Source: Hamiltosporidium tvaerminnensis FI-OER-3-3
Lineage: Eukaryota > Fungi > Microsporidia
Direction of reading: 5' to 3'
Assembly (NCBI GenBank): GCA_022605425.2
Contig: JAKIMF020000013.1
Span: 620,001-684,000 of the forward strand
Length of the DNA stretch: 64,000 nucleotides
This document shows, one piece after another, positions 4,301 to 35,689 of this stretch. Both the position numbers and the translations under genes were made by a program. Below the pieces are notes generated by a model. That model was not told the origin of the DNA, searched no databases, and saw only the letters and a program-made list of their open reading frames with translations. Each line of letters starts with the position of its first letter. Positions within the stretch are counted from its first letter, which is position 1.

Positions 4301-5845
4301 ATAAATTAACCATAAATTAAAATAGTTACATGTATGGTTCGCCGGGAAGCCAATGAGCCATAAAAACATGTTATTTTTTTGTTTCCACATAAATTAGTTA
4401 AAAAATCTAGCTTTTTTCGTGTAGAAGAATGCTTCAAATAAATAATAAAATATATTTAAGCAATAAAACAAACTACGAAAAATCTTAAAAACTAGTCTAT
4501 CGTGAATATATCTGGTAAAACAACTTTCTAAAACTTAAAATATTTTATGCGAAGTTCCAATGACCCGTAACTACCTTAAAGTTGCTAGTTTTGTCCATGT
4601 TTGCAATACTACAAATATGAATAAAAAATATGATATCGATCATCAATTAAAAAATATCGGAGATTTGCACCTATTTCTCTGTATCTACTGAGAAAAATCA
4701 TGTGGTTTTAAAATTGTTCACGGTGTTTTAGGCAAGTTTGAAAGCACAAGATGCATGTTTGGAAAGATTGCCAATACCACACCCAATTTAGTTTCATTCA
4801 TAATAAAAAAACATTTGCATATGAAAAACCAATGATAATGTATAAAATGTGGTCTGGTATCATAAATACGGTTAGTAGTTGTATTTTTATTCTGCAAAGA
4901 AAAATAAATGGCCTTGAAACCGAAGCTTTTTAGAGCATTATCTATAAAAATAATCAAATACTTACCGACTGCATTAGAATATTGTAATTGTGTAAATTTT
5001 CTTTTAAAAAAGAATTTTATAGCTTCAATATTATTTGAAATCCATATTAATAATTATTTAATAGGAAAATCTGAAAATCTCCTTTAAAACTGTAAGAGTC
5101 AAAGAAAGTAATATAAATAAATAAAGCTGCTTCTCTTTTTATCTAGTAAAAAAAACTCTATTTCAATAAATTTCGTGTATTATGAAAATGAAGAGCGTAT
5201 TCTCCTTATGATATGCAAATATATCTTCTATTATGTGCAAGAAAATTTAAAAAAGAACATTAATATATTTTTAAACACTTCAAAAAAAATAACGGGAAGA
5301 AATTCCAACATACAAATTTTTGAACAATTATTTTTTTACAAAGAATGAGCTTTTATCAGAATTTCTTTGAATTTTAAAAAGCCATCAAATCTTTCTTTCG
5401 AATTCAAAGATTTACCAACTGATTTTTTAGTTTTTAAAATCTCGTTATTTACTTAAAAGACATTTCTGTGGTTATATGCTACTCTATTTCTGGAAATACG
5501 CAGAGTTGGTATGGTTTTTTAGAGAAATTTGTATTCCATAAATATAGTTATTGTTCATAGCTAATCTTTCTCATGAAACATCTAAAAACCAAAACATAAT
5601 CGAGAATGCAGATAGAAATATAATAGAAGCATCAAAATATCTAGTAAAAACCAGACACCTATTTGCGATATAAAAATAACACAGAGTAGTTAAAAAAAAA
5701 TATCTGGGAATCGCATGAGTAATTTATTTAGTTATTTCTTTTGATACTTGAAATTAATAGAATATTTCTTTTTTCATCTATATTCTGTCTTAATGATTTA
5801 GACAACTGGCTTGTACTTCTAGTTTAGAACTTGGTTGAAGATTTA

Positions 5846-13900: not shown

Positions 13901-16140
13901 AAAAATTGTTTCCGTATTTATTATTTCGATGAAACAAAAATTTTTTCTCTTGGATAGAATATAATAGACATTAACTAACCTATTCTTAAATTGTTTATAA
14001 TTATTATTATTCAAACCGAAACAAGAAATTTAGTTTTATAATAATATACTTACAATCTCTGTAGGTTTTTTTTAATAGGGTTCTGCACATCATAGTCATT
14101 TAATTGTAAGCTTCAATGGAAGTTAAATAGAAAACCAATATAAATTACCAAAAACAAAATTTTACGAATCATTTTATAATTAAATATTGCAGTTTTCTAT
14201 ATAATAAACGATTCCATTATAATTTCCAAAATCTATGATTCAAATACTTCAGCTAATGGTAAATTTAAGAAAAGAAACATTCATTTTATAGTTAAAGACG
14301 TTAATTTCAAATAAATTTCACTCAAAATAATTTATATAATTCTGGTTTGTATATATTTACGGTTTATTTAGCTTGTACTTAATATTACCTATGCATGCTG
14401 ATTTTTATTTTTTTTAGAATTTGCAATTAAACTAACTTTATTCAAGTTTTAGTATAAATATCAAATAAAAATTAAAGATATAGATTAAAAATTGTGTGTA
14501 TTATTTTTTTCGTGCAGAATTTTTCCGAATTAACATTAATAAAGCCATCAAGGTTAAAAAAAGAGGAAGGTTGGATATGGTTTAACAACTATTTTGATTA
14601 GAAAACCTTCTTTGTTTTGAAACATTCACAAAACGACTTAAATCCCATTGTAGTGGAATATGAGATTAGGATTTACTCAATAAGTTGTTAGCTGTTGTAA
14701 AACGATTTAAACAATTGCTGTTCATATACCGTGACGCGATTTAATAAATATATATGTTGTAAAGTCTTTTTTATTTCGTTTATATTTATGAATTTTTTCG
14801 TTAATTAACTAAAACAATATTTTTCGATTAATTTATCGTCATATTGCTATATGATGATTATTTTAAAACCAATTTTAATATCTCTTAATGTTATTTAATC
14901 ATTTTAGCATTAATTACCATAACATTCATATAAATATAATGATTTTTAAGAGTTTTAAATGATATAATAAACATTATAACATATATTATTCTAAAATTAA
15001 TTTAAAACCTATTTTATTATAGAAAAATATGCATTCCTTGTGATAAATCATGTTGACTGTTTGCTATATTCTTCTAAAAATAATCAAATATGCTTTTTTC
15101 TATTGTCAAAAGGGTATTACCATATAATTATTGTATATCTTCAGAATTTTTAATATTGTACTAACTTAAAATTCATATTTAAATTTAATTTTTTTAATAA
15201 AAATAGAAGTCATGAACCATTATAACTTAAATTTCAATCATTAGAAGTTTATCATTTCGCTTATTATACTATTTTATATTTTTATTATTTTTGTTCAATT
15301 TATTGAATTAATCTTATATTTCTAGTATATATTTCTTTTTAATGTAATTTGGTAACTCTGTAGTACCAAAAAACTATTATTTTTTATACTACAAAAATTT
15401 CACTTAATTCATTCTTTTATTTTAATATATTTATTTGGTTGACCGAGAAAATTATATTTGTTATTCTAAATTTTCTTAATACTAGATCCGTTAAGTTATA
15501 ACTTGAAAATCCAATTTTGCAATGGTTAACAAAAAATTATTTTAATCATTACCAAACAGAAATTTATGCTTGATACTGATTTATGATCCAAAAATTTAAA
15601 TTTTAGAATTTTATAAATAAGCTTTGTCTATCTATTTTAAACATTTGAATCATTAAATCTACCATTATTTTTTTGAGTAAATTATTATTGGCAAATATGC
15701 CTCTATATTTTGCTGTTTCATTTCTATGTAATTAGATTCATAATTCAAAACTTAGCAAATATATTATTATAACGCTATATAAAAATTTCAATTTTTATTT
15801 AATGTTCAATAAATAAAGCCACTAGTATATTGTTTTATTCATCTCATAAAGTTTTTTTTTTAAAAATTATTTATATATCCTTTAAAGTATTTTTGCGCAA
15901 GATCTATCATTTTATGAACAAAGAGACGCTAGTTAAGAAATTTTTTCTATAATGTATACATAAATTATTTTTTAAAGCAATGTATGTCCATATATTTATT
16001 ATTTTTTTTATTTATATATTATCTAAGATTGACAAATATATTCATTTTTTTTGAATTTATGATTCAAATGATTAAAACTTTAAGATCTTTGGTCATTTTT
16101 ATATTCTAAACATGAATACATTAATTCTATGATTGTATAT

Positions 16141-16842
16141 TAAAATAAAATAAAATAAAATTCGGCTTTATTGATAAAAAGTTTTCAGCACTACTCGTTG
16201 TATTGTTTTTAAAGGGAAACTAAGCTATTCATTTCCATACCATGCACCACACTCAAAAACAAAAATCCAATAAAACCGACCCGACTGTGTACAGCCACCA
16301 TATCCACATTTGGACTTCGGTTCTAGAAGGTCACATAAAAATCCCTAAAATCCCACACTTACACATTAACGTCCGGCACGTCAAGTCTTCAACATATCAT
16401 TTCTGATTTGTTAAGTCTTTAACTGTGCCGGACAAATTTGCTGCAGCCCAGCAGCTTGCCACTCCCCTTCCAAAAGCACTTTTTATACCTTTCTTTTCCT
16501 TAGTATAAGAAGATTTCAAACACAATTTGATTCCTAATGGAATCTTCGATCCAATCACATTCAGGTAGACTCATCTTGATGTTAAAGTAAGGGTTTTAGC
16601 ATCGACAAGTGCCTAGGTAAACCGAGAATCTCGTTGCGTCACAGTCGAATTTACCTCTTTGTATCGCCCCAGAAGAAATATGCTCACCGATTGAGCAACT
16701 TGCTGTTCCCGTTGGAACGGCGCTTAACGCCACGTAAACCCATAGTACATTCCGTCGTAACATAAAACGTAAAGGGGTTTTGCTTGATCACTCTTAGCAT
16801 TACCCAACGAGAACCACGTGGAGGTGGTGATCATCTCTCGTC
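16141..16842 (-). mobile_element. 702-bp non-coding ribozyme-headed SINE-like retro-insertion
   Basis: Perfect 15-bp direct repeat TCTATGATTGTATAT at 16126-16140 and 16843-16857. The 5' end (minus) is exactly G1 of the HDV-like ribozyme and the 3' end is a (TTTTA)4 tail. The body is GC-richer than the flanks, with several hairpins and no long ORF. Confidence 0.8.
16785..16842 (-). ncRNA. HDV-like self-cleaving ribozyme, copy 2
   Basis: GACGAGA GA UGAUCAC C ACC UCCACGU GGU UCUCGUU GG GUAAU GCUAA GA GUGAUCA. All HDV pairings (P1, P1.1, P2, P3) and the J4/2 cytosine (16797) are present. Identical to copy 1 at 56 of 58 positions. Confidence 0.85.
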
Positions 16843-17560
16843 TCTATGATTGTATATATTGCTATAAATTTACATTTTGATGTTATATATGGTATTTTAA
16901 CAGGTTTGGATATTTAAATATGTAGTCATCTATTAGGCCGTTATCTTTTTCATTCTTTCTAGCCTCTAGAAATTAATGGAAATATATATAATTCGTTAAA
17001 GTAAAAAATTATCGTTATTCGAACATTCCTTTAATTTATTTATGAAAAACAATTTGTGAATATTAAAAAGTTGGCGTTTCTTTAAAATAATATATACAGG
17101 TAAAGCAGAATATTACAATACAAGTCTTATATTTAAAAAATACTGAAAACTTTGAAGCATATGAAAAAAATAATAGATATGATACTAAATTTTTCTCAAT
17201 TAGAAATCTCGATGCTGTCTTTTAAAATAGTTTTTGCTTATATAAAGGAAGAAATGTATTTAAAAATCAAATTGGTAATGAGATATCCAAGCATAATATA
17301 GACTCTAGTCTTTAGAAAGTGATATTTTAAAACGTTTAGTATGTGCCTTCTTATAAGTGAGAGCTAGTGGAATTTATTAAATGCCGGATAAATGGATAAT
17401 GTTAAAAAAGCATTTGCGTTTTTTTGCTTAGATCCTTTTTGTAAGGTGCTAAAATGTTTCTTTCGTTGTATTTATCCAATTTGATTATTTTATTTAAAAT
17501 CATTTTTTTATTTACTTTTTTTTGAGTTTTATTCTTTTTAATTTTACATGCTTTTGTTGT

Positions 17561-17618
17561 TGATCACTCTTGGCGTTACCCAACGAGAACCACGTGGAGG
17601 TGGTGATCATCTCTCGTC
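17561..17618 (-). ncRNA. HDV-like self-cleaving ribozyme, copy 1, abutting the LSU rRNA 3' end
   Basis: P1 GACGAGA/UCUCGUU with a G1-U wobble. P2 UGAUCAC/GUGAUCA. P3 ACC/GGU. L3 UCCACGU. P1.1 CC/GG. Minimal P4 G-UAA-C. J4/2 GCCAA with the C75-equivalent at 17573. Confidence 0.85.
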
Positions 17619-17864
17619 ATGAGTGCTTGCTAGCCTCATCCACTCGCGATCTTGTGGATTACAGCTGCAGCACCCAAGCACGTCGTCTTCATGCTAGATA
17701 GTACAGTAGGGCCACGTTGAAGCTTAGAGGCCTTCAGCTCTTCCGTGCCAGGACGTTGCTTAGCCCGTACCTTACCAGATATAGGCACGACAAGAGGTCC
17801 TGCAGATTCGTTCCTTTCGTACTAGCATCTGCTCCCTTAGTACCGTAGCAGTAGTGTAAAACTA

Positions 17865-17902
<38 letters not shown>

Positions 17903-18006
17903 TGTTAGTGGGTGAACAATCCAACACTAGGTGCCTTCTGCTGCACCATGATAGGAAGAGCCGACATCGAAGAATCAAAAAGCAGCGTCGCTATGGTCGC
18001 TCGGCT

Positions 18007-18038
<32 letters not shown>

Positions 18039-18314
18039 ACGTCACCCATTGCTAGATGCTCTGTAAGCAATGGGATCGCTAGGCCTGGGTTTCCCCTCGT
18101 ATTACCGTGTAGTAATACGTCAGGGTGGCTTTTGCCCTTGGACTACACCCTCGGTTTCTCTCCGAAGTTAGCCACCCTTAGGCCATCTGCGTTGTAGTCT
18201 AGCAGATGTACCGCCCCAGTCAAACTCCCCATCTGACAAATACGGGTCGCTTGCACAGCTAGTGGTCTTTCAGTTGCCCCACCTTGCTACAGCTGCACAA
18301 GACCCCGGCGTCAC

Positions 18315-18351
<37 letters not shown>

Positions 18352-18448
18352 GCATAGCCAAGACCGTTCCCTTGGCTCGTGGGTTCGCAGGTTGTTAGTC
18401 GGGACAGTGGGAATCTCGTTGCTCCTTTCGTGCGCGTCACTAATTAGG

Positions 18449-18502
<54 letters not shown>

Positions 18503-20178
18503 CTGCGTATACAGCCCGACCTGTCTTAACAGCTGGGCACTGGGCAGAATTCACTTTGTGTCCACGTACTACACCACCACAAAGCTATGTTTTTATTAAA
18601 CAGTCGGATTCCCCGTAACTAAAAGTTCTAATTCCTTAGAGCTAATCCTTTTCCCGAGGTTACGGATCTAATTTGCCGAATTCCCTAACTAACGTTTGTC
18701 CTATCGCTTCCGGTATACACCGTACGGAGCCCTGCTGCGGTCGGTACGGTCATCAAGGTCATAAAGGTATTTTTTCACGGATCCCAGCTAAGACAATTGC
18801 ATATGCCTGTATTGCTCTGTACAACACGCTACATACAGTACTGCTACAAGGAATGGGTACCTCCTTGTTGTCGTGCCTAAGACGTAAACACCATATTTAC
18901 TGTTGCCAAATACCTAGATGGCTCGGGAATATCAACCCGATTCCCTGTCGAGATCTCAGGACCGGCTAACCTTCTCCTTATGAAGTCTTAGAAGAACCCT
19001 TCTCCTGAAGCCTTCGCGATTCACACACGAATTGTAACTACTACCACCAAGATCAGCACTAGTGTATGCTCCACTTTACCTCACGGTAAACCTTCTGCAC
19101 ATACACCACGCCCATCTACCTATAAGTACTGCATCGGGTCTGGCCTTGTACCGTCCATTTTCGGCGCACATGAATTCGGTAGGTACGTTGCAACACGTTT
19201 CTTACCGGATGCCAACCTCCATGGCCACCGCCCTACTGTCACAATTCATCTACGGCCTTAAGAAAAACCAGATTAGGCCCCTTATCAGTACGTCAGGTTG
19301 ATCCCTCTTCGCACGTCCTGCTTACCAGAACGCGCCCACTAGACACATATATAATCGCTATTCTTTAGTACAAGAATAACACGTACACGTTCGCAGTTCG
19401 TCGGTATGTGGAGATTGCTCCCCTTTCATCCCGCCGTTCCTCTACCGCATAATACTAAATAACTTGTGTCTGCTGTCCTAAGAGACATTTCGATGGGAAC
19501 CAGCTACCCGGCTGTTCGATTGGTCTTTCGCCCCTACACCCAGCTCAAACCATCGATTTGCGCGTCAGAACAAGTTTAGGTCCTCCACCATCCTTTCGAA
19601 TGGCTTCAACCTGGCCAGGTGTAGTTCACAGCCCTTCGGGTCGCATCCGAACAGCTATATCTGCTTTCGCTACGCTTAAAGGAAACCCCCCTTTAACTTG
19701 CTATGCAGATGCACTCCTTGGTCCGTGTTTCAAGACGGGTCCTGTTATCAGGATACTCAATACAATTTCACGTCTTTGCACTTTTTAGCTTTTCACCTTT
19801 CCATCGCTGTACTATTACGCTATCGGTCTCCGCTCATATTTAGCCTTAGATGGAACCCACCACCTCTTCAGGCTGCATTACCAAGCAACCCTACTCTGCC
19901 CATTACTCGTCACTACGGGGCTATCACCCTCTATGGCTTACCTGTCCCGGTAATTCGTTACGACGATCTTAACAATGCCCGGAGGCTTACATTCGGGGCT
20001 ATTTCTTGTTCGCTCGCCGCTACTACAGAAATCCTAGTTAGTTTTTGTTCCTCCCCTTAATAATATGCTTAAGTCCAGGGGGTAGTCAGGCATTTACAAA
20101 TGCCGTTCGGCCTTAGTTCTCGGAAACTATTCCGGCCTTCCTCGGATACGGAGCCAAGTGATCCCTTGTATGAGTTTA
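17619..20178 (-). rRNA. Large subunit rRNA with fused, shortened 5.8S-like 5' segment
   Basis: Universal LSU motifs on the minus strand: GACTTAAGCATAT, CCCGTCTTGAAACACGGACC, TTAAGGTAGCCAAATGCC, GGGATAACTGGCTTGTGGCAGCC, GAGCTGGGTTTAGACCGTCG and the sarcin-ricin loop AGTACGAAAGGAAC. 5.8S-like start AACTCATACAAGGGATCACTTGG. Ends approximate. Confidence 0.97.
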
Positions 20179-20210
20179 AAATGAAAAAACTACACAATAA
20201 AAGTACTATC
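20179..20210 (-). other. Very short internal transcribed spacer
   Basis: About 30 nt of AT-rich sequence between the SSU terminal GGATCA and the 5.8S-like start. Confidence 0.8.
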
Positions 20211-21512
20211 ACTGATCCTGCTGCAGGTTCTCCTACAGCAACCTTGTTACGACTTGTATCCAATCTAATCCTACGTCCTCAGAAGGAAAACCCTCTTCGA
20301 ACATAGCACCATCTTAGATAACGACGGGCGGTGTGTACAAAGAACAGGGACGCAGTCGTCGCCCGTTAGTGACACGCGACTACTAGGAATTCCTGGTTCA
20401 TGCGTCCATTACAGAACGCAATCCCAACCGAGTTATCCTTTATCTTTACAATATACCTAGAAATAACATTGTAGTGCGCGTGCAGCCCAGAACATCTAAG
20501 GGCATCACAGACCTGTTATAGCCCCCTCCTTCCTGAAACTTATAGTCCCCAGTCGCCGTAGCTGAGGGTCTCACACATTACAGCAATAAACCTAAAAGTC
20601 ACCTCACATGTTGTGAACGGCCATGCACCACTTAGTCGTACTCATCAAAGATTCGTCATACAACTGGCCCTGGTAAGTTGTCCCGCGTTGAGTCAAATTA
20701 AGCCGCACACTCCACTCCTGGTGGTGTCCTTCCGTCAATTTCTTCAAGTTTCAATCTTGCGATCGTACTATCCCCATAGCCCATATACTTGATTTCTCGT
20801 GGGTACCACTACGTAACACCCAGTTGGCATAGTTTACGGCCGGAACTACAGGGGTCTCTAATCACCTTTGCTCCTCCGGCTTACGTCCTTGATCACCGGA
20901 AACGTACTGGACGACAGCTTTCGCTTCGGTTTGTCCTACGTAGGTCGTCAACTTTCACCTCTCGCTACGCAATACAGTCGCCCTCTTCCGCTCCTACATG
21001 CTAACCTAGAATGCCAATACACTCCATGAAGAAAGTGTCTTCTAGCATCCCTGTCAACACTGACTACGGACCTTTTAAATGCAGCAATGCACTATGACAC
21101 TCCTGGAGCTGGAATTACCGCGGCTGCTGGCACCAGACTTGCCCTCCAGTCAATCACCGGTATTCTACCCCGGTTACAAAATATACGTCTCATAACTGCC
21201 TCTCTCCAATTGGGCAAGTTTCGCGCCTGCTGCTGTCCTTAGACCTGGTAGCCGTTTCTCAGGCTCCCTCTCCGGAATCAAACCCTGATCCCCCGTACCC
21301 GTTAAAGCCATCGTACGCCCTTACCGTACGATAAAACTGATGGGTCGGCGTCTTACTCGTGTTATTAGCCACAGTTTCCCGCGGTTATCCTTCCTACACG
21401 ATTAAATAATCACCGTTCTACTGAGCCGTTCGCAGTTCCACTTTCGCTTCACCAGACTTGCATGGCTTAATCCCAGAGACAAGCATCCTCGTCAGGCAGA
21501 ATCAACCTGTTG
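20211..21512 (-). rRNA. Small subunit rRNA (~1.3 kb, microsporidian reduced type)
   Basis: Starts CAGGTTGATTCTGCCTGAC. Contains GTGCCAGCAGCCGCGGTAAT, AAACTTGAAGAAATTGACGG and TTGTACACACCGCCCGTC. Ends GTAACAAGGTTGCTGTAGGAGAACCTGCAGCAGGATCA. Confidence 0.98.
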
Positions 21513-30477: not shown

Positions 30478-32383
30478 CGAGAACACAAGCAATTCATATT
30501 GCTACATACATACATACACAACAAAGAAGAATAAATATTTATCAATGAATACTCAAAGGTAAATAAAACAACCGAAATTAAAGCTTGAGATCAAAATAAG
30601 GAAAAATATTTAAATACGATAGAATATGAATGTGAATAAAGCCCGCAAAAACAATCTCTCATAAAATATCTTTTATATTTTAGTTGAATATTTGTAAAAT
30701 GTATAAGATTGGAAATTTGATCCAAATAAATTTTAACTTTTGCCTCAATGCATATTTAAAATGATGATTATTTTAACAATTCTTTAATTTCGAATAAAGA
30801 TAATTTTCGAAATTTCAATATTTTATACGAGCTATGAAATAGGAAAACTGATAGAACATGTAAAAAATCACAATATAAACCAATAAAATCTATAGTTTTT
30901 ATTTGATTTTTTGTTTTTTAAAAAAAAGGGCGCAATTTATTTCTAACTAGATTATAAAAAAATCTTTTGGGTAAATCCAAACATTTCCAGATGTTCGTAA
31001 TGTATCTTTAATTTATTATATTTCAGACAGGTAAAACAAAACTAAAAACTGAAATCTATACTTTACAATCTGAAAACATTAAATTTTTGATTCATTAACA
31101 GTAAGCACTATTAATTTATCTTTCGGATTTCTTTTATATAATTATACTTAAAATAAAAAAAGCTCTTGTAAAAAATATTCACAAAGAATTACAAATATAT
31201 TTGATTCATTCTTTATATAAAGAAAAATTGGTTTACAAAAATATACAAAGTAAATTCAAATAAAAAACTGCATTTAAATTGGTTGGATATGAGCACCAGT
31301 ATTTATTAAAAAGCTTAATGTTCATATATATCGTCAAAGAGACCCGATCATATATTCTGGCATTTCTGCTCTTTAAAACTAATGATCTATCAAGTAAATT
31401 AAATTAAAACCACTAATAATACTCTGTTTTACAAATAAAAGATATTATTATTTTATTGAGAATATAAGTTAGGATTATTGTCAAAAATATGAAATTTACA
31501 AAAAATAGAAATATTATTCTTTTTTTTTAGTTTGAACTCTTAATATAATATGAAAATACATTATTACATAAAAATCTAGCGGCTATGATTATAAAAAACT
31601 CCGAAAAAAATTTAAATGTCTGCATCTAAGCATATTTAGATATTCAAAACTTTCTATAAAAATATTCGAATATAATTCTAAATTATTTCAAATTCGCAAT
31701 CTCTAATTCTAAAAATATTATGTTTGTCTTAAATTATGAGAAAAATAACTTTGTATTTAAACAAGATAAAAAAGGTTATTACATTCACTATATTAACTTC
31801 ATTTTAGTATATTTTAACTTTTTACTTCGTTTAGTAAACTTTTAATTATTTACTAAATATAAGCAAGAAAATATTTTTCTATGAACTAATTGGCAATAAA
31901 CCATATAAATATTCTTATTTTTAGAAATTAATTTGTTAAAACATTCAGAGGAATTACCTGACCAAATCAAAAATAGACTATATGCAATTTTTCAAAGCTT
32001 TATTTGAAATTTAAATATTAATTCAGTTTTATAATATACAACCTTAAACCGGAACTTTTCGAAAATATATTTTTTTAAAACAAAAAGAATTTTTCTATTT
32101 AACGAATTTGCTGGAAATAAAAACAATAAGATTTTTATTTTTATGTGTCAAATGGTACAATATATTTAAATATTTTATTCGACTAAGAACCTTTTCAACC
32201 AGAGTAAACAAACATTTGAATAAAACATTCAGGCGAAAATAAATATAAATGTAGTAAACCAAGTAAACAGAATTATAAGCAAAATATATTTTAAATCTAT
32301 TTTCCATAGATTTAATTATTAAATTGATCTTTACTTTGTATATTTTAATTGCTTATAATACATTTTTATAATATCTAGGACTA

Positions 32384-33681
32384 TTTAATAAAATTCTGGG
32401 TTAAAATATTTTAACATTTTTATATGTTTTCTTCTACCTCTTTAACCACTATTGTTTCTTCTTCCAAATCCGACTCTTCATTTATGTTATTGGTCGGTTC
32501 CTCCAGAGTGGTTCCTCCTTGTGAAATAAGGGGTGTATTATTTTTTGGTTTTAAAATTTTAACACCATCTTCCTCTCTTTTCGCTTCTTTTAAAGGGGGT
32601 ATTGGTTCCTCATGCATCTCTGATCTCATAATAACACCCATTGACGCTCTCTCCCAGCTCTCTTCGGCATTTAGTCCTGACTCAAGTCCTCTTCGTCGAT
32701 CAAAGGAAATTGTTTCGACTGTCTTCTTAAGTACTATAGACTGAATATATGTCTCTATATTTATGGGTATTTCTAGTCTTTTAAGATGAGATTTATGGTA
32801 TTTTGTCACAATACCGTCCCAGATCATTACATAAGGGATTATCTCAACACTACACTTATAAATAAGACCTAACTCATTGGCTAGCAGGTCATACTTCCTA
32901 AGTTTTTCAGTTTCAACTATTTGAAGTGAATCTTGGGAAGTGATTCCTACTTCAATAAGTGTTATCTTATTCTTCTTCTTATCTAAAATAAATATATCGG
33001 GTCTGTTATTCCGAATTTTAACATCAGTTTTTATTCTGGTATCCACTCTTATCTCTGCATACTCATTATCAAAAATTTCTTGAACTGAGTGACTCCTTAT
33101 TCGTTTTGAAGACTTAAACTTATATCTATTTAGAAGAAGTAGGTGTAGGCATCTAACCACTTCATTGTGTCGTCTAGTATAGTCATGACCTAGCATTTTT
33201 TCACATCGAGTTGCTAGATGATCTACGGTCTTACCAGACTTCCCGCAATGTTGATACACACCATCTGCTCCCCAGAATACATTTCTATCCTGGATATAGC
33301 AGAACATAGCTTCGTTGTGTGGCCTAATATTCCCTCTCTTTAACCATCTTGAAGAGTCACTAACACTCACTTCAAGTTCATTTTTCCTTGCATTATATAA
33401 CTTTGAATAGAGTTTTCGTTTTTCTATTTCTTTATATATTTTTGCCAGTTGAGCATCTTCTAAACTTTTCTTAGTGACTTCTTCTACTAACCTGTACTTT
33501 ACTTTTAAGAAACCTTTTATTAGTGCAAGATGTATTTTCTTATTATTCTGAACCTTGAGGATTGCTGCTCGTCTAGTTGATATTTCTTTTCTTTTTTTAG
33601 ACGATCAAAGAGTTGGAAAAGCAGATGTTCGCTTCGCAACTCAACACTATGTAGGCCTCTTCCAAGTTCTGTTCTAGGGAG
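32384..33681 (-). mobile_element. 5'-truncated non-LTR retrotransposon with restriction-like endonuclease (RLE class)
   Basis: 10-bp TSD TCTAGGACTA at 32374-32383 and 33682-33691. Begins in the post-RT region (LPRTELGRGL) and has a frameshift upstream of the 32420-33370 ORF. Confidence 0.85.
32420..33370 (-). pseudogene. C-terminal CCHC knuckle plus PD-(D/E)xK endonuclease portion of a non-LTR RT protein
   Basis: (C>Y)QHC...DHLATRC knuckle, RHNEVV motif, and RPDIFILD...LIEVGIT...EKLRKY. The RT core is absent because of the 5' truncation. Confidence 0.85.
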
Positions 33682-34522
33682 TCTAGGACTAAATTATACA
33701 TTTGTTTTAAATGTTTTTTTCATTAGAATACAAAATAAAAAATTTTTAAATTAATCTATCTGTTTTTTCAATAACGAATCTATGAATTAATCTGATTTGT
33801 ATTTATATAAATGCTATAGTGAAATATTATAAAAAAATAATTTCTTACAATACATCAGTCAGTTATTATCTGAATTTCAATCGATTATTATTTTTTTTAT
33901 TCCAAATTATATACGCATGTATTTTACGTCGAGCCTGTAAATTCTTCATATTCCAAATTAATACTATATACTTTTATTAACCAACTGTAAAATTAAAATT
34001 TTAATCATTATTTTGAGATTTTTGGTAATGATTTTCCAATTTAAATTTATACGAATTAATTGAGTTTGATGAAAAATTTTGGTATTCAATTCGAATTGAA
34101 ACTAATTTTTCAAGGTTTTAAATTCTTAAAATATAAATTTAGAATTACTAAAAATTTATTCTCTACATTGCTTTTTGTATTATTGTTACTCAACATAATT
34201 AAATTTACTTAGAATAAACTTAATCGGTTTTGATGCTGAAAATAAAATTATTCGATTCTATCAACGAATTATTAAAAAAAAAACGGTTTTTTGGATTCTA
34301 ATTTAAATTAGTTATTCTGAAATTAAATACCAATATATAAAAAATCCATAAATAGCACTAAATTAATTTTATTTTTTCTATTTTTAGTAATATATGTTGT
34401 TTTCTAAAAAGGTTTTTATTTTTAACTTGTTTTTTTAAAAATCTAAATTTCTAATCATTGAATGTGTAGCCCCTACATATTATAAATAAATTTTTAGATA
34501 AAAAGTATATTTTAAATATTAT

Positions 34523-35689
34523 TTAACTCAAAAGCATACCGAAACCACTCAACAACACAAAAATATGCCCATAAAAATTTACATTTTTCCAAATGGAAAA
34601 TGTTTTATCTAAATCCAGGGTGATGAATGGAACAGAAAAATAGGAAACTATTGCCATCATTTGGAATAAACAAACAAATTTACAAATTGAATCGTTGAGA
34701 TATTTTTTATAAATTCTTATGTTGTTTCTTATGAAGGGTATAATGAGACCAAAACTTAAGAACATAAGGAAATAACACCAGTTTAAACCATGCCATATAG
34801 CAGAAACAAAAAAGGTTGCTAGACTGGCCATAAAAATCGAATATCCTTTTAAAGGAACGAATACGCAATCTTTAAGCCACTTATTTGTACAGATATTCCA
34901 TGAATCTGTAACACCTTTGATATTTGTAGAAAATTCCACACTTAACGGAAAAATATTTTTTTGATTTGTATATCCATCCAATGAAAATACAGAATGTGCA
35001 AAAGTCCAAACAAAATAGTACTTACATCTAAAACCGAAGCTAAATACATACAGAAACAAAAAATTCTTAAAGAAATTACTTTTTTGCATTTCCAACATTT
35101 TTTCAACACTAAACTTACTTCTTATAAGTAAATGAAGTCCCATAAAAATAAAAGACTCCATTAATACTCGAAGTGAGAACAAAATATATTTTTTAGTTTG
35201 TTTTGGTCTTTCAATAAATCCTTTAAATGATGGTGCTGGACCTACCAAAATACTGGGAAGATAAAAGATATAACTTATAAGATTATAAATGGTGTGCGTA
35301 GAAAAATCATACTCCTTTCCCAAATAATACATCTTGATTACGAGCATCATTAGAGGTCCACTTATATTTGGCCCGAGTCTTTCACCATAAATTCCTTTAA
35401 TAAAATTATTCAATTGTTGGTATAAAAGTAAACCAAGAATATTACTTCCAGTCATTATAAAACGTATTCTTTCAGTTCGTTTGAACAAATATAAGACAGA
35501 AAGATTTGAAAAAACAACTACCAAAAAGAAGATTACGTCAATAATACCAAATGCTATCAAAATACAACATAAGCTAAAAAGAGGAAACAAATTTGTTCTT
35601 TTTGTCAATTTTAAACCGAAAGTAATAATATATGTTAGAAAAAGTGCAAGAATATATCTAAATTCCGGCATTTCTACTATTTTGTTCAT
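34523..35689 (-). CDS. MBOAT family lysophospholipid acyltransferase (Ale1/LPCAT-like)
   Basis: 388-aa protein with multiple TM segments. Motifs YLPSILVGP, KYYFVW, SWNICTNKWLK and catalytic SAIWHG. CCC immediately before the ATG. Confidence 0.92.
   Translation of the reverse strand: MNKIVEMPEFRYILALFLTYIITFGLKLTKRTNLFPLFSLCCILIAFGIIDVIFFLVVVFSNLSVLYLFKRTERIRFIMTGSNILGLLLYQQLNNFIKGIYGERLGPNISGPLMMLVIKMYYLGKEYDFSTHTIYNLISYIFYLPSILVGPAPSFKGFIERPKQTKKYILFSLRVLMESFIFMGLHLLIRSKFSVEKMLEMQKSNFFKNFLFLYVFSFGFRCKYYFVWTFAHSVFSLDGYTNQKNIFPLSVEFSTNIKGVTDSWNICTNKWLKDCVFVPLKGYSIFMASLATFFVSAIWHGLNWCYFLMFLSFGLIIPFIRNNIRIYKKYLNDSICKFVCLFQMMAIVSYFSVPFITLDLDKTFSIWKNVNFYGHIFVLLSGFGMLLS

Follow-up and report, generated by a model that had tools for sequence, protein, structure and literature searches.

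The DNA analysed here (the window: 64 kb, C17:620001–684000) belongs to a microsporidian genome of 21.6 Mb in 17 contigs, labelled C1, C2, C10, C14, C17 and so on, all of which was searched. On its minus strand Rfam identifies microsporidian small subunit (SSU) and large subunit (LSU) ribosomal RNA (rRNA) genes. Downstream of the latter, on the same strand and at a distance of 0.8–1.5 kb, lies a 702-nt element, the first base of which is G1 of a 59-nt minimal hepatitis delta virus (HDV)-like ribozyme. Comparison of its copies reveals that this is a real, recently active, ribozyme-headed non-autonomous retroelement, of the type lacking long terminal repeats (non-LTR), with a 3′-module derived from a long interspersed nuclear element (LINE). 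The features concerned, in window coordinates, are:

20210–21512, minus strand: SSU rRNA gene (Rfam), same strand as the LSU gene
17617–20105, minus strand: LSU rRNA gene (Rfam)
17560–17618, minus strand: second ribozyme copy, abutting the 3′-end of the LSU rRNA; differs from the element head at two unpaired positions
16843–16857: target-site duplication (TSD) copy on the 5′ side of the element; present as a single copy in the empty units C1c, C14a/b and C10a/b
16141–16842, minus strand: 702-nt non-autonomous non-LTR retroelement (5′-end 16842, 3′-end 16141), with copies elsewhere
16784–16842, minus strand: head, a 59-nt minimal HDV-like ribozyme (sub-threshold Rfam match, alignment and pairing), with the predicted cut just 5′ of 16842
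16523–16783, minus strand: body (nt 60–320), without a match outside element copies
16141–16522, minus strand: LINE-derived 3′-module (nt 321–702), comprising a fragment coding for the C-terminus of open reading frame (ORF) 2, the 3′-untranslated region (UTR), the terminus CCGAATTTTA and the tail
16265–16329, minus strand: 3′-structure common to element and LINE, an outer stem around two hairpins (18 pairs)
16141–16160, minus strand: (TTTTA)4 tail, of the type also found on the LINE and the other element copies
16126–16140: TSD copy on the 3′ side of the element (exact 15-mer)

Ends and anatomy of the element

Within the window there are exactly two occurrences of the 15-mer TCTATGATTGTATAT, at 16126–16140 and 16843–16857, and the 702 bp between them open, on the minus strand, with GACGAGA and close with four TTTTA units (16160–16141). 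The perfect 15-bp TSD given in the preliminary description, with G1 at one junction and (TTTTA)4 at the other, is thereby confirmed to the nucleotide. Only five exact 15-mers with full base complexity are directly repeated in the window at a spacing of 200–1500 bp; one of these is the TSD pair, and two arise from the two ribozyme copies. Contigs from three sequencing runs of DNA or unknown type cover this stretch; one of them, from an independent public run (X2), spans the 5′ junction (16813–17012) with zero differences.

The element is non-coding, with no ORF of 60 aa or more. Neither a tRNA-like part nor an A or B box (at most one mismatch) is found in its 702 nt, which include 12 internal runs of four or more T residues; on these three characteristics a short interspersed nuclear element (SINE) transcribed by RNA polymerase III (Pol III) was rejected. 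The body possesses a G+C content of 38–56%, compared to an A+T-rich spacer. Searches with blastn (7-nt words) and tblastx return no match to it in the LINE described below, the central LINE copies or the spacer units, and the remaining genome contains none except in element copies. The body was also considered as a structured RNA and rejected as such, its folding z-score (−1.18) not being significant.

The head scores 27.3 bits (E 0.02) against Rfam model RF02682 and 25.1 bits against RF00094, and both HDV models place the first paired position at 16842, which is the junction itself. Its helices, P1 (7 bp, 1–7/31–37), P2 (7 bp, 10–16/52–58), P3 (3 bp, 18–20/28–30) and P1.1 (2 bp, 22–23/38–39), form a nested double pseudoknot in the canonical order, in which 19 of 19 pairs are standard in all five distinct copies; with the partners slid as a control, 30–53% of pairs are standard. 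At the cleavage-site end P1 begins with a G1–U37 wobble. The J4/2 segment reads C46 followed by U/C47-A48-A49, and from the Rfam alignment C46 is presumably the catalytic C. Among the 15 copies of this ribozyme in the genome only four positions vary, every one of them unpaired, such that the complete double pseudoknot is kept. No relatives came to light when metagenome contigs were scanned for exact matches to the ribozyme core. On these sequence characteristics the ribozyme is predicted to cleave just 5′ of G1.

Family copies and the partner LINE

Ten rDNA units (four on C1 and two each on C10, C14 and C17) were oriented from the LSU end and compared. The units form tail-to-tail inverted pairs approximately 30 kb apart (C17:607900–637618, with equivalents on C1, C10 and C14), and a Hamiltosporidium tvaerminnensis contig is 95% identical to the spacer of the window. 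The genome holds five full-length copies of the element, representing three independent insertions (C17, C10 and C1). The twin of the window element (C17:608676–609377, 100% identical) lies in the other arm of its inverted pair; since the C17 arms are 100% identical over 3.5 kb from the LSU end, and divergent beyond, these two copies are counted as one event. C10 carries an inverted pair of copies (98% identity) and C1 a single copy (99%). An older copy on C14b (88% identical) lacks the first ~12 nt and thus starts inside the ribozyme; it is flanked by a 3–4-bp duplication and looks like an ordinary 5′ truncation. A 186-nt 3′ fragment is found in C1a/b, and further, shorter 3′ fragments exist.

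All three full-length insertions start at G1 with zero extra bases. They occupy different positions in spacers that are otherwise homologous between units: measured from G1 of the LSU-end ribozyme, the offsets are 776 nt (C17), ~1.6 kb (C10), 474 nt (C1) and, for the truncated copy, ~540 nt (C14). Every insertion lies no more than 2.4 kb downstream of an LSU gene and is oriented as that gene. The C17 pair is flanked by the 15-bp TSD ATATACAATCATAGA and the C10 pair by its own 15-bp TSD, AGGTAGATAATAAGC; the tails read (TTTTA)n or (TTTA)n. In other units the target sites of C17 and C10 are uninterrupted, with one copy of the duplicated sequence and no insert; these are therefore empty sites. 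Two counterparts were located in the window unit by comparison of units:

17145/17146: empty counterpart of the C1 insertion point
15257–15267: approximate empty counterpart of the C10 insertion point

Element copies are 98.3–99.1% identical, while the flanking spacer of the same units is 89.8–95.6% identical, from which it follows that the insertions are younger than the divergence of the units. The preliminary description proposed that an RNA beginning at the ribozyme G1 had been copied full length by target-primed reverse transcription (TPRT). The three independent G1 starts, two of them with their own 15-bp TSDs, and the empty sites bear this out. Copies with different TSDs and G1 starts, for which it proposed a search, exist as a small family, and the empty sites are found in other rDNA units of this same genome.

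When LINE and element copies are taken together, eight separable insertion events can be distinguished within ~11 kb downstream of the LSU genes, and all eight are in the sense orientation relative to the rRNA genes; the chance of such agreement is about 1 in 250. Over the initial 6 kb, antisense tails are absent. The element has inserted in near-full-length form at least four times in a zone which amounts to ~0.1% of the genome, and a few short 3′ fragments of LINE or element are located elsewhere. One of these, an element-type 3′-end of ~100 nt (L040, positions 4716–4813; C2:37716–37813), is 86% identical, tailed, and found outside the rDNA beside a syntaxin-like gene. Such fragments indicate that integration is not strictly limited to the rDNA spacer. 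Two explanations fit the clustering: only those copies which can be reached by read-through of RNA polymerase I (Pol I) remain active and found new copies, or the RNA–protein complex reinserts near its site of synthesis.

Two of the best matches to the reverse transcriptase domain RVT_1 lie in the spacer of the C1a/b units, between the LSU-end ribozyme and sequence resembling the 3′-end of the element. They belong to a LINE (C1:620150–625345) with ORF1 (448 aa), ORF2 (1130 aa, in which Pfam recognizes Exo_endo_phos and RVT_1 domains), a 13-bp TSD and a (TTTTA)n tail; its closest protein relatives are from H. tvaerminnensis and H. magnivora, which, together with the spacer match noted above, makes a Hamiltosporidium the very probable source of the DNA. 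Nucleotides 321–406 and 476–584 of the element are 81–83% identical to the end of ORF2 and the 3′-UTR of this LINE, and the two have the terminus CCGAATTTTA and the tail in common. An older LINE relative on C2 is 69% identical to element nt 440–698, including the part which is absent from the C1 LINE; the ORFs near these weak C2 matches have no reverse transcriptase domain. RNAalifold applied to eight aligned element and LINE 3′-ends predicts an outer stem enclosing two hairpins (18 pairs), with one compensatory pair per hairpin between element and LINE (22–27, A-U versus G-C; 41–46, G-C versus A-U). This shared fold would fit a protein-recognition structure under selection and is a candidate recognition site for the reverse transcriptase. 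The 702-nt family accordingly has the attributes of a non-autonomous non-LTR retroelement: TSDs and a tail, copies at several sites with matching empty sites, absence of coding capacity, and a 3′-end that an autonomous LINE of this genome also has.

The LINE family consists of seven long copies, all within rDNA clusters: the intact inverted C1 pair and five degenerate copies. The latter (L054, C17:614653–619440; L055–L058) occupy the same position, ~6.3 kb behind one LSU gene per rDNA cluster, share one 3′ truncation point close to the ORF2 end, begin with GACGAC, and at the 5′-end reach ~320 nt beyond the intact C1 copy. No HDV-like match is found in the intact C1 LINE or its 5′ flank, and no ribozyme in the 5′ region of the five degenerate central copies; at their 5′-ends the LINE copies carry sequence different from it. 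The covariance model described below detects none in two contigs with LINEs from other Hamiltosporidium assemblies either. A low-depth contig from run X16, which carries another organism label, corresponds to window positions 16816–17017: it joins 17017 to G1 and includes 27 nt of the head before passing into LINE-5′-UTR-like sequence. It may stem from a relative in which a LINE is headed by part of the ribozyme, or the unitig may be a chimera.

Other spacer and genomic LINE sequences were recorded. Two 5′-truncated LINE 3′ fragments of ~620 and ~230 bp (L032, C1:1232190–1232830; L039, C1:1206964–1207194) occupy a common spacer insertion site with the 16-bp duplication TTAACGAATTATATAT, and in one of the units a ribozyme-headed element directly adjoins. 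Genome-wide there are more than 150 RVT_1 matches in long open frames of ~1250 aa with near-identical scores, which point to a large, young LINE family that is not related to the spacer LINE. Within the window, the region 32374–33691 was considered as a partner LINE with a restriction-like endonuclease and rejected: its ORF (32420–33370, minus strand, 316 aa) has no Pfam match, the region does not carry the terminal motif, and its similarity to the element is confined to A+T-rich low-complexity sequence. The neighboring ORF (34523–35689) encodes an MBOAT acyltransferase.

The ribozyme at the LSU ends and the origin of the element

The same 59-nt ribozyme stands directly behind the LSU gene in ten of ten units (four on C1, two on C10, two on C14, the window unit, and C17:607900–607958). 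It is invariant among them save for one G-to-A substitution in one C10 unit, and is 95–97% identical to the element heads. A covariance model built from the copies finds exactly 15 sites in the 21.6 Mb, namely the ten LSU ends and the five element heads, together with three additional matches at E ~1. Whether an old insertion might have left the LSU-end ribozyme behind as its head was also considered, and this was rejected: in none of the ten units are the terminal 8–15 nt of the LSU duplicated downstream, and hence nothing suggests such an origin. The head of the element is common to the rDNA and was probably taken from it.

What the ribozyme does at the LSU ends is suggested by its position; it is a candidate self-cleaving step in LSU 3′-end formation. 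A broader proposal is that the element is headed by the host's own rRNA 3′-end ribozyme. Every LSU would then end in a self-cleaving HDV-like ribozyme that forms, or helps to form, the rRNA 3′-end; the spacer LINE/SINE pair would have captured this signal or donated it to the rDNA, and the system would live on Pol I read-through. We hold this to be quite possible, leaning slightly against it. If true, dependence on Pol I read-through would confine the retroelement system to the few kb behind the LSU genes and to the sense orientation, and the three G1 starts would document, in natural insertions, that an rRNA-end ribozyme cleaves in vivo.

For the element itself, the likely explanation, in our estimation, is a non-coding non-LTR retrotransposon assembled from the 59-nt ribozyme head, a 260-nt body and a 380-nt 3′-module from a LINE of the apurinic endonuclease (APE) plus reverse transcriptase type, which is freed by self-cleavage of a read-through transcript and mobilized by the LINE. 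A copy situated downstream of an LSU gene, and co-oriented with it, would be transcribed within a longer transcript, most likely through Pol I read-through, no promoter being apparent in the element itself. The ribozyme would cut just 5′ of G1, releasing an RNA with G1 as its first base. The ORF2 protein of the LINE would recognize the shared 3′-structure and the (TTTTA)n tail; a spacer target would be nicked with a stagger of 13–16 bp and the RNA reverse-transcribed to its very 5′-end. Cleavage at G1 and full-length reverse transcription would together yield a new copy that starts at G1 and has a 15-bp duplication on its flanks. That Pol I makes the precursor is suggested by the position and orientation of the copies, and it is presumably this particular LINE that supplies the enzymes. 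Of the promoterless SINE released from Pol I read-through transcripts that the preliminary description envisaged, the promoterless non-autonomous family with its LINE-derived 3′-module, lacking ORFs and Pol III boxes, is upheld, while the Pol I portion remains at this inferential level.

Several observations weigh against this explanation. The head falls below the Rfam gathering thresholds (27.3 versus 44 bits for RF02682; 25.1 versus 50 bits for RF00094); the shortfall is located in the P4 region, which is here cut down to a few nucleotides. No pair varies among the 15 ribozyme copies and thus there is no covariation, a consequence of the copies being nearly identical. The C1c copy has no TSD and ~140 bp of spacer are gone at its site; its tail abuts a 5′-truncated LINE fragment. 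The ~260 nt of the body (nt 60–320) are without any matching source sequence. The element and the intact LINE are only ~81% identical at the 3′-end, from which we surmise that the true donor or partner subfamily may differ. Lastly, no LINE copy in the genome carries the ribozyme, which makes the element a composite rather than the product of simple internal deletion from an extant LINE.

As a rival explanation, G1 could be a transcription start, the first ~60 nt being a travelling internal promoter like Pr77 of L1Tc/NARTc and the ribozyme fold secondary or inactive. The same 77 nt act in trypanosomes as both promoter and HDV-like ribozyme (PMC3383444), and for this reason a precise 5′-end alone cannot separate the two functions. 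However, a promoter would be without an obvious role directly at the end of the LSU gene, where these 59 nt are found in all ten units; A and B boxes for Pol III are lacking, and its transcription would be stopped by the 12 internal T-runs. A self-promoting element would also have no need to be in the sense orientation downstream of an LSU gene, as every copy is, and the whole double pseudoknot has been kept with substitutions at unpaired positions only. We therefore consider a promoter origin of the 5′-end unlikely. Alternatively, the element could have arisen when a LINE by chance retrocopied the 3′ external transcribed spacer of some unit (yielding a processed pseudogene), with later spread alongside the rDNA. 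The near-identity of the head to the ribozyme behind every LSU gene is in keeping with this, as is the occurrence of 5′-truncated LINE 3′ fragments in some spacers: an ancestral unit with one such fragment ~260 nt behind the ribozyme could yield a founder transcript. Yet identity with the ten present-day 3′ spacers ends after nt 59–65, and nt 60–320, with a G+C content of 38–56% in an A+T-rich spacer, match nothing. Moreover the same 702-nt unit was inserted at least four times at different sites, which resembles a family with a master copy, unlike a one-off retrocopy. The suggestion that the element was copied from the 3′ external transcribed spacer of another unit is consequently not sustained, there being no match beyond the 59–62-nt head behind any of the ten LSU genes, and this origin appears improbable.

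The element could, finally, be the product of a DNA-level rearrangement or of assembly, through duplication of a spacer segment, gene conversion among units or the faulty joining of a repeat. The rDNA is repeat-rich and arranged in perfect inverted pairs, with C17 arms identical for 3.5 kb, and short-read contigs are fragmented at the element, covering the 5′ but not the 3′ junction. Against this, the element has precise ends, only one of which carries a simple-repeat tail; the different sites have different TSDs and clean empty counterparts; the contig of the independent run crosses the 5′ junction without a difference; and the same element is found on three other contigs. An artefact of this type is very improbable.

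Comparison with known systems

Ribozyme-headed retroelements are known from insects, as R2 and its short internally deleted elements (SIDEs) (PMC3414825, PMC3774820), and from trypanosomes (PMC3185411, PMC3383444); a full-text literature search found no paper mentioning HDV-like ribozymes together with microsporidia. The family described here connects a mobile element with what may be a ribozyme-dependent step of rRNA 3′-end formation. Its insertions could provide a cheap genomic read-out of in vivo cleavage, three independent events having started on the predicted nucleotide. It also offers a case for studying how a non-autonomous element is assembled from a processing signal and a LINE tail, and for studying confinement and co-orientation behind rRNA genes, which could reflect Pol I dependence or local reinsertion.

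The head, body and LINE-derived 3′-tail, mobilization in trans and TSDs are shared with classical SINEs (PMC5786205). The head of the latter derives from a Pol III gene (tRNA, 7SL or 5S promoter), whereas here it is an RNA-processing device. The R2 retrotransposons (PMC3774820) are likewise co-transcribed with rRNA and released by a 5′ HDV-like ribozyme, but they are autonomous, encode a restriction-like endonuclease and insert at one conserved 28S site; the present element has a partner LINE with an APE endonuclease (Exo_endo_phos) and spacer targets. Membership of the R2 clade was rejected on the basis of the several spacer sites and the Exo_endo_phos domain of the partner ORF2. In L1Tc/NARTc and their relatives in trypanosomatids (PMC3185411, PMC3383444, PMC4035085) a 5′ HDV-like ribozyme, with its cut at +1, is common to a LINE and the non-autonomous partner, so that every new copy takes the head along and leaves upstream sequence behind. 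There the autonomous LINE carries the head, which doubles as an internal promoter, and the elements are dispersed genome-wide; here the LINE is without the head, no promoter features were found in the element, and full-length copies are confined to the rDNA spacer.

The closest analogues are the R2/R1 hybrid and R2 SIDEs of Drosophila (PMC3414825), which are also short non-coding rDNA elements. In these a 5′-terminal HDV-like ribozyme sets the RNA's 5′-end by self-cleavage from an rRNA co-transcript, as is predicted here, and the 3′-end is borrowed from the LINE that supplies the TPRT machinery. The hybrid, which joins the R2 ribozyme to a 3′-end from the APE-type LINE R1, is mobilized in rDNA with 14-bp TSDs (PMC3414825), comparable to the 13–16 bp found here. 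The present insertions differ in occupying several spacer sites downstream of the LSU gene rather than one fixed 28S site, in their microsporidian host, and in their minimal, nearly P4-less ribozyme. Furthermore, this ribozyme occurs in no LINE but only at LSU ends and element heads; a SIDE in the strict sense, that is an internal-deletion derivative of a ribozyme-bearing LINE, was rejected on these grounds, and the head looks to be derived from, or shared with, the host rDNA and not derived from R2. This family is set apart by the host phylum, the minimal form of the ribozyme, the spacer targets, and most of all by a ribozyme which otherwise resides only at the ends of the LSU genes and not on LINEs.

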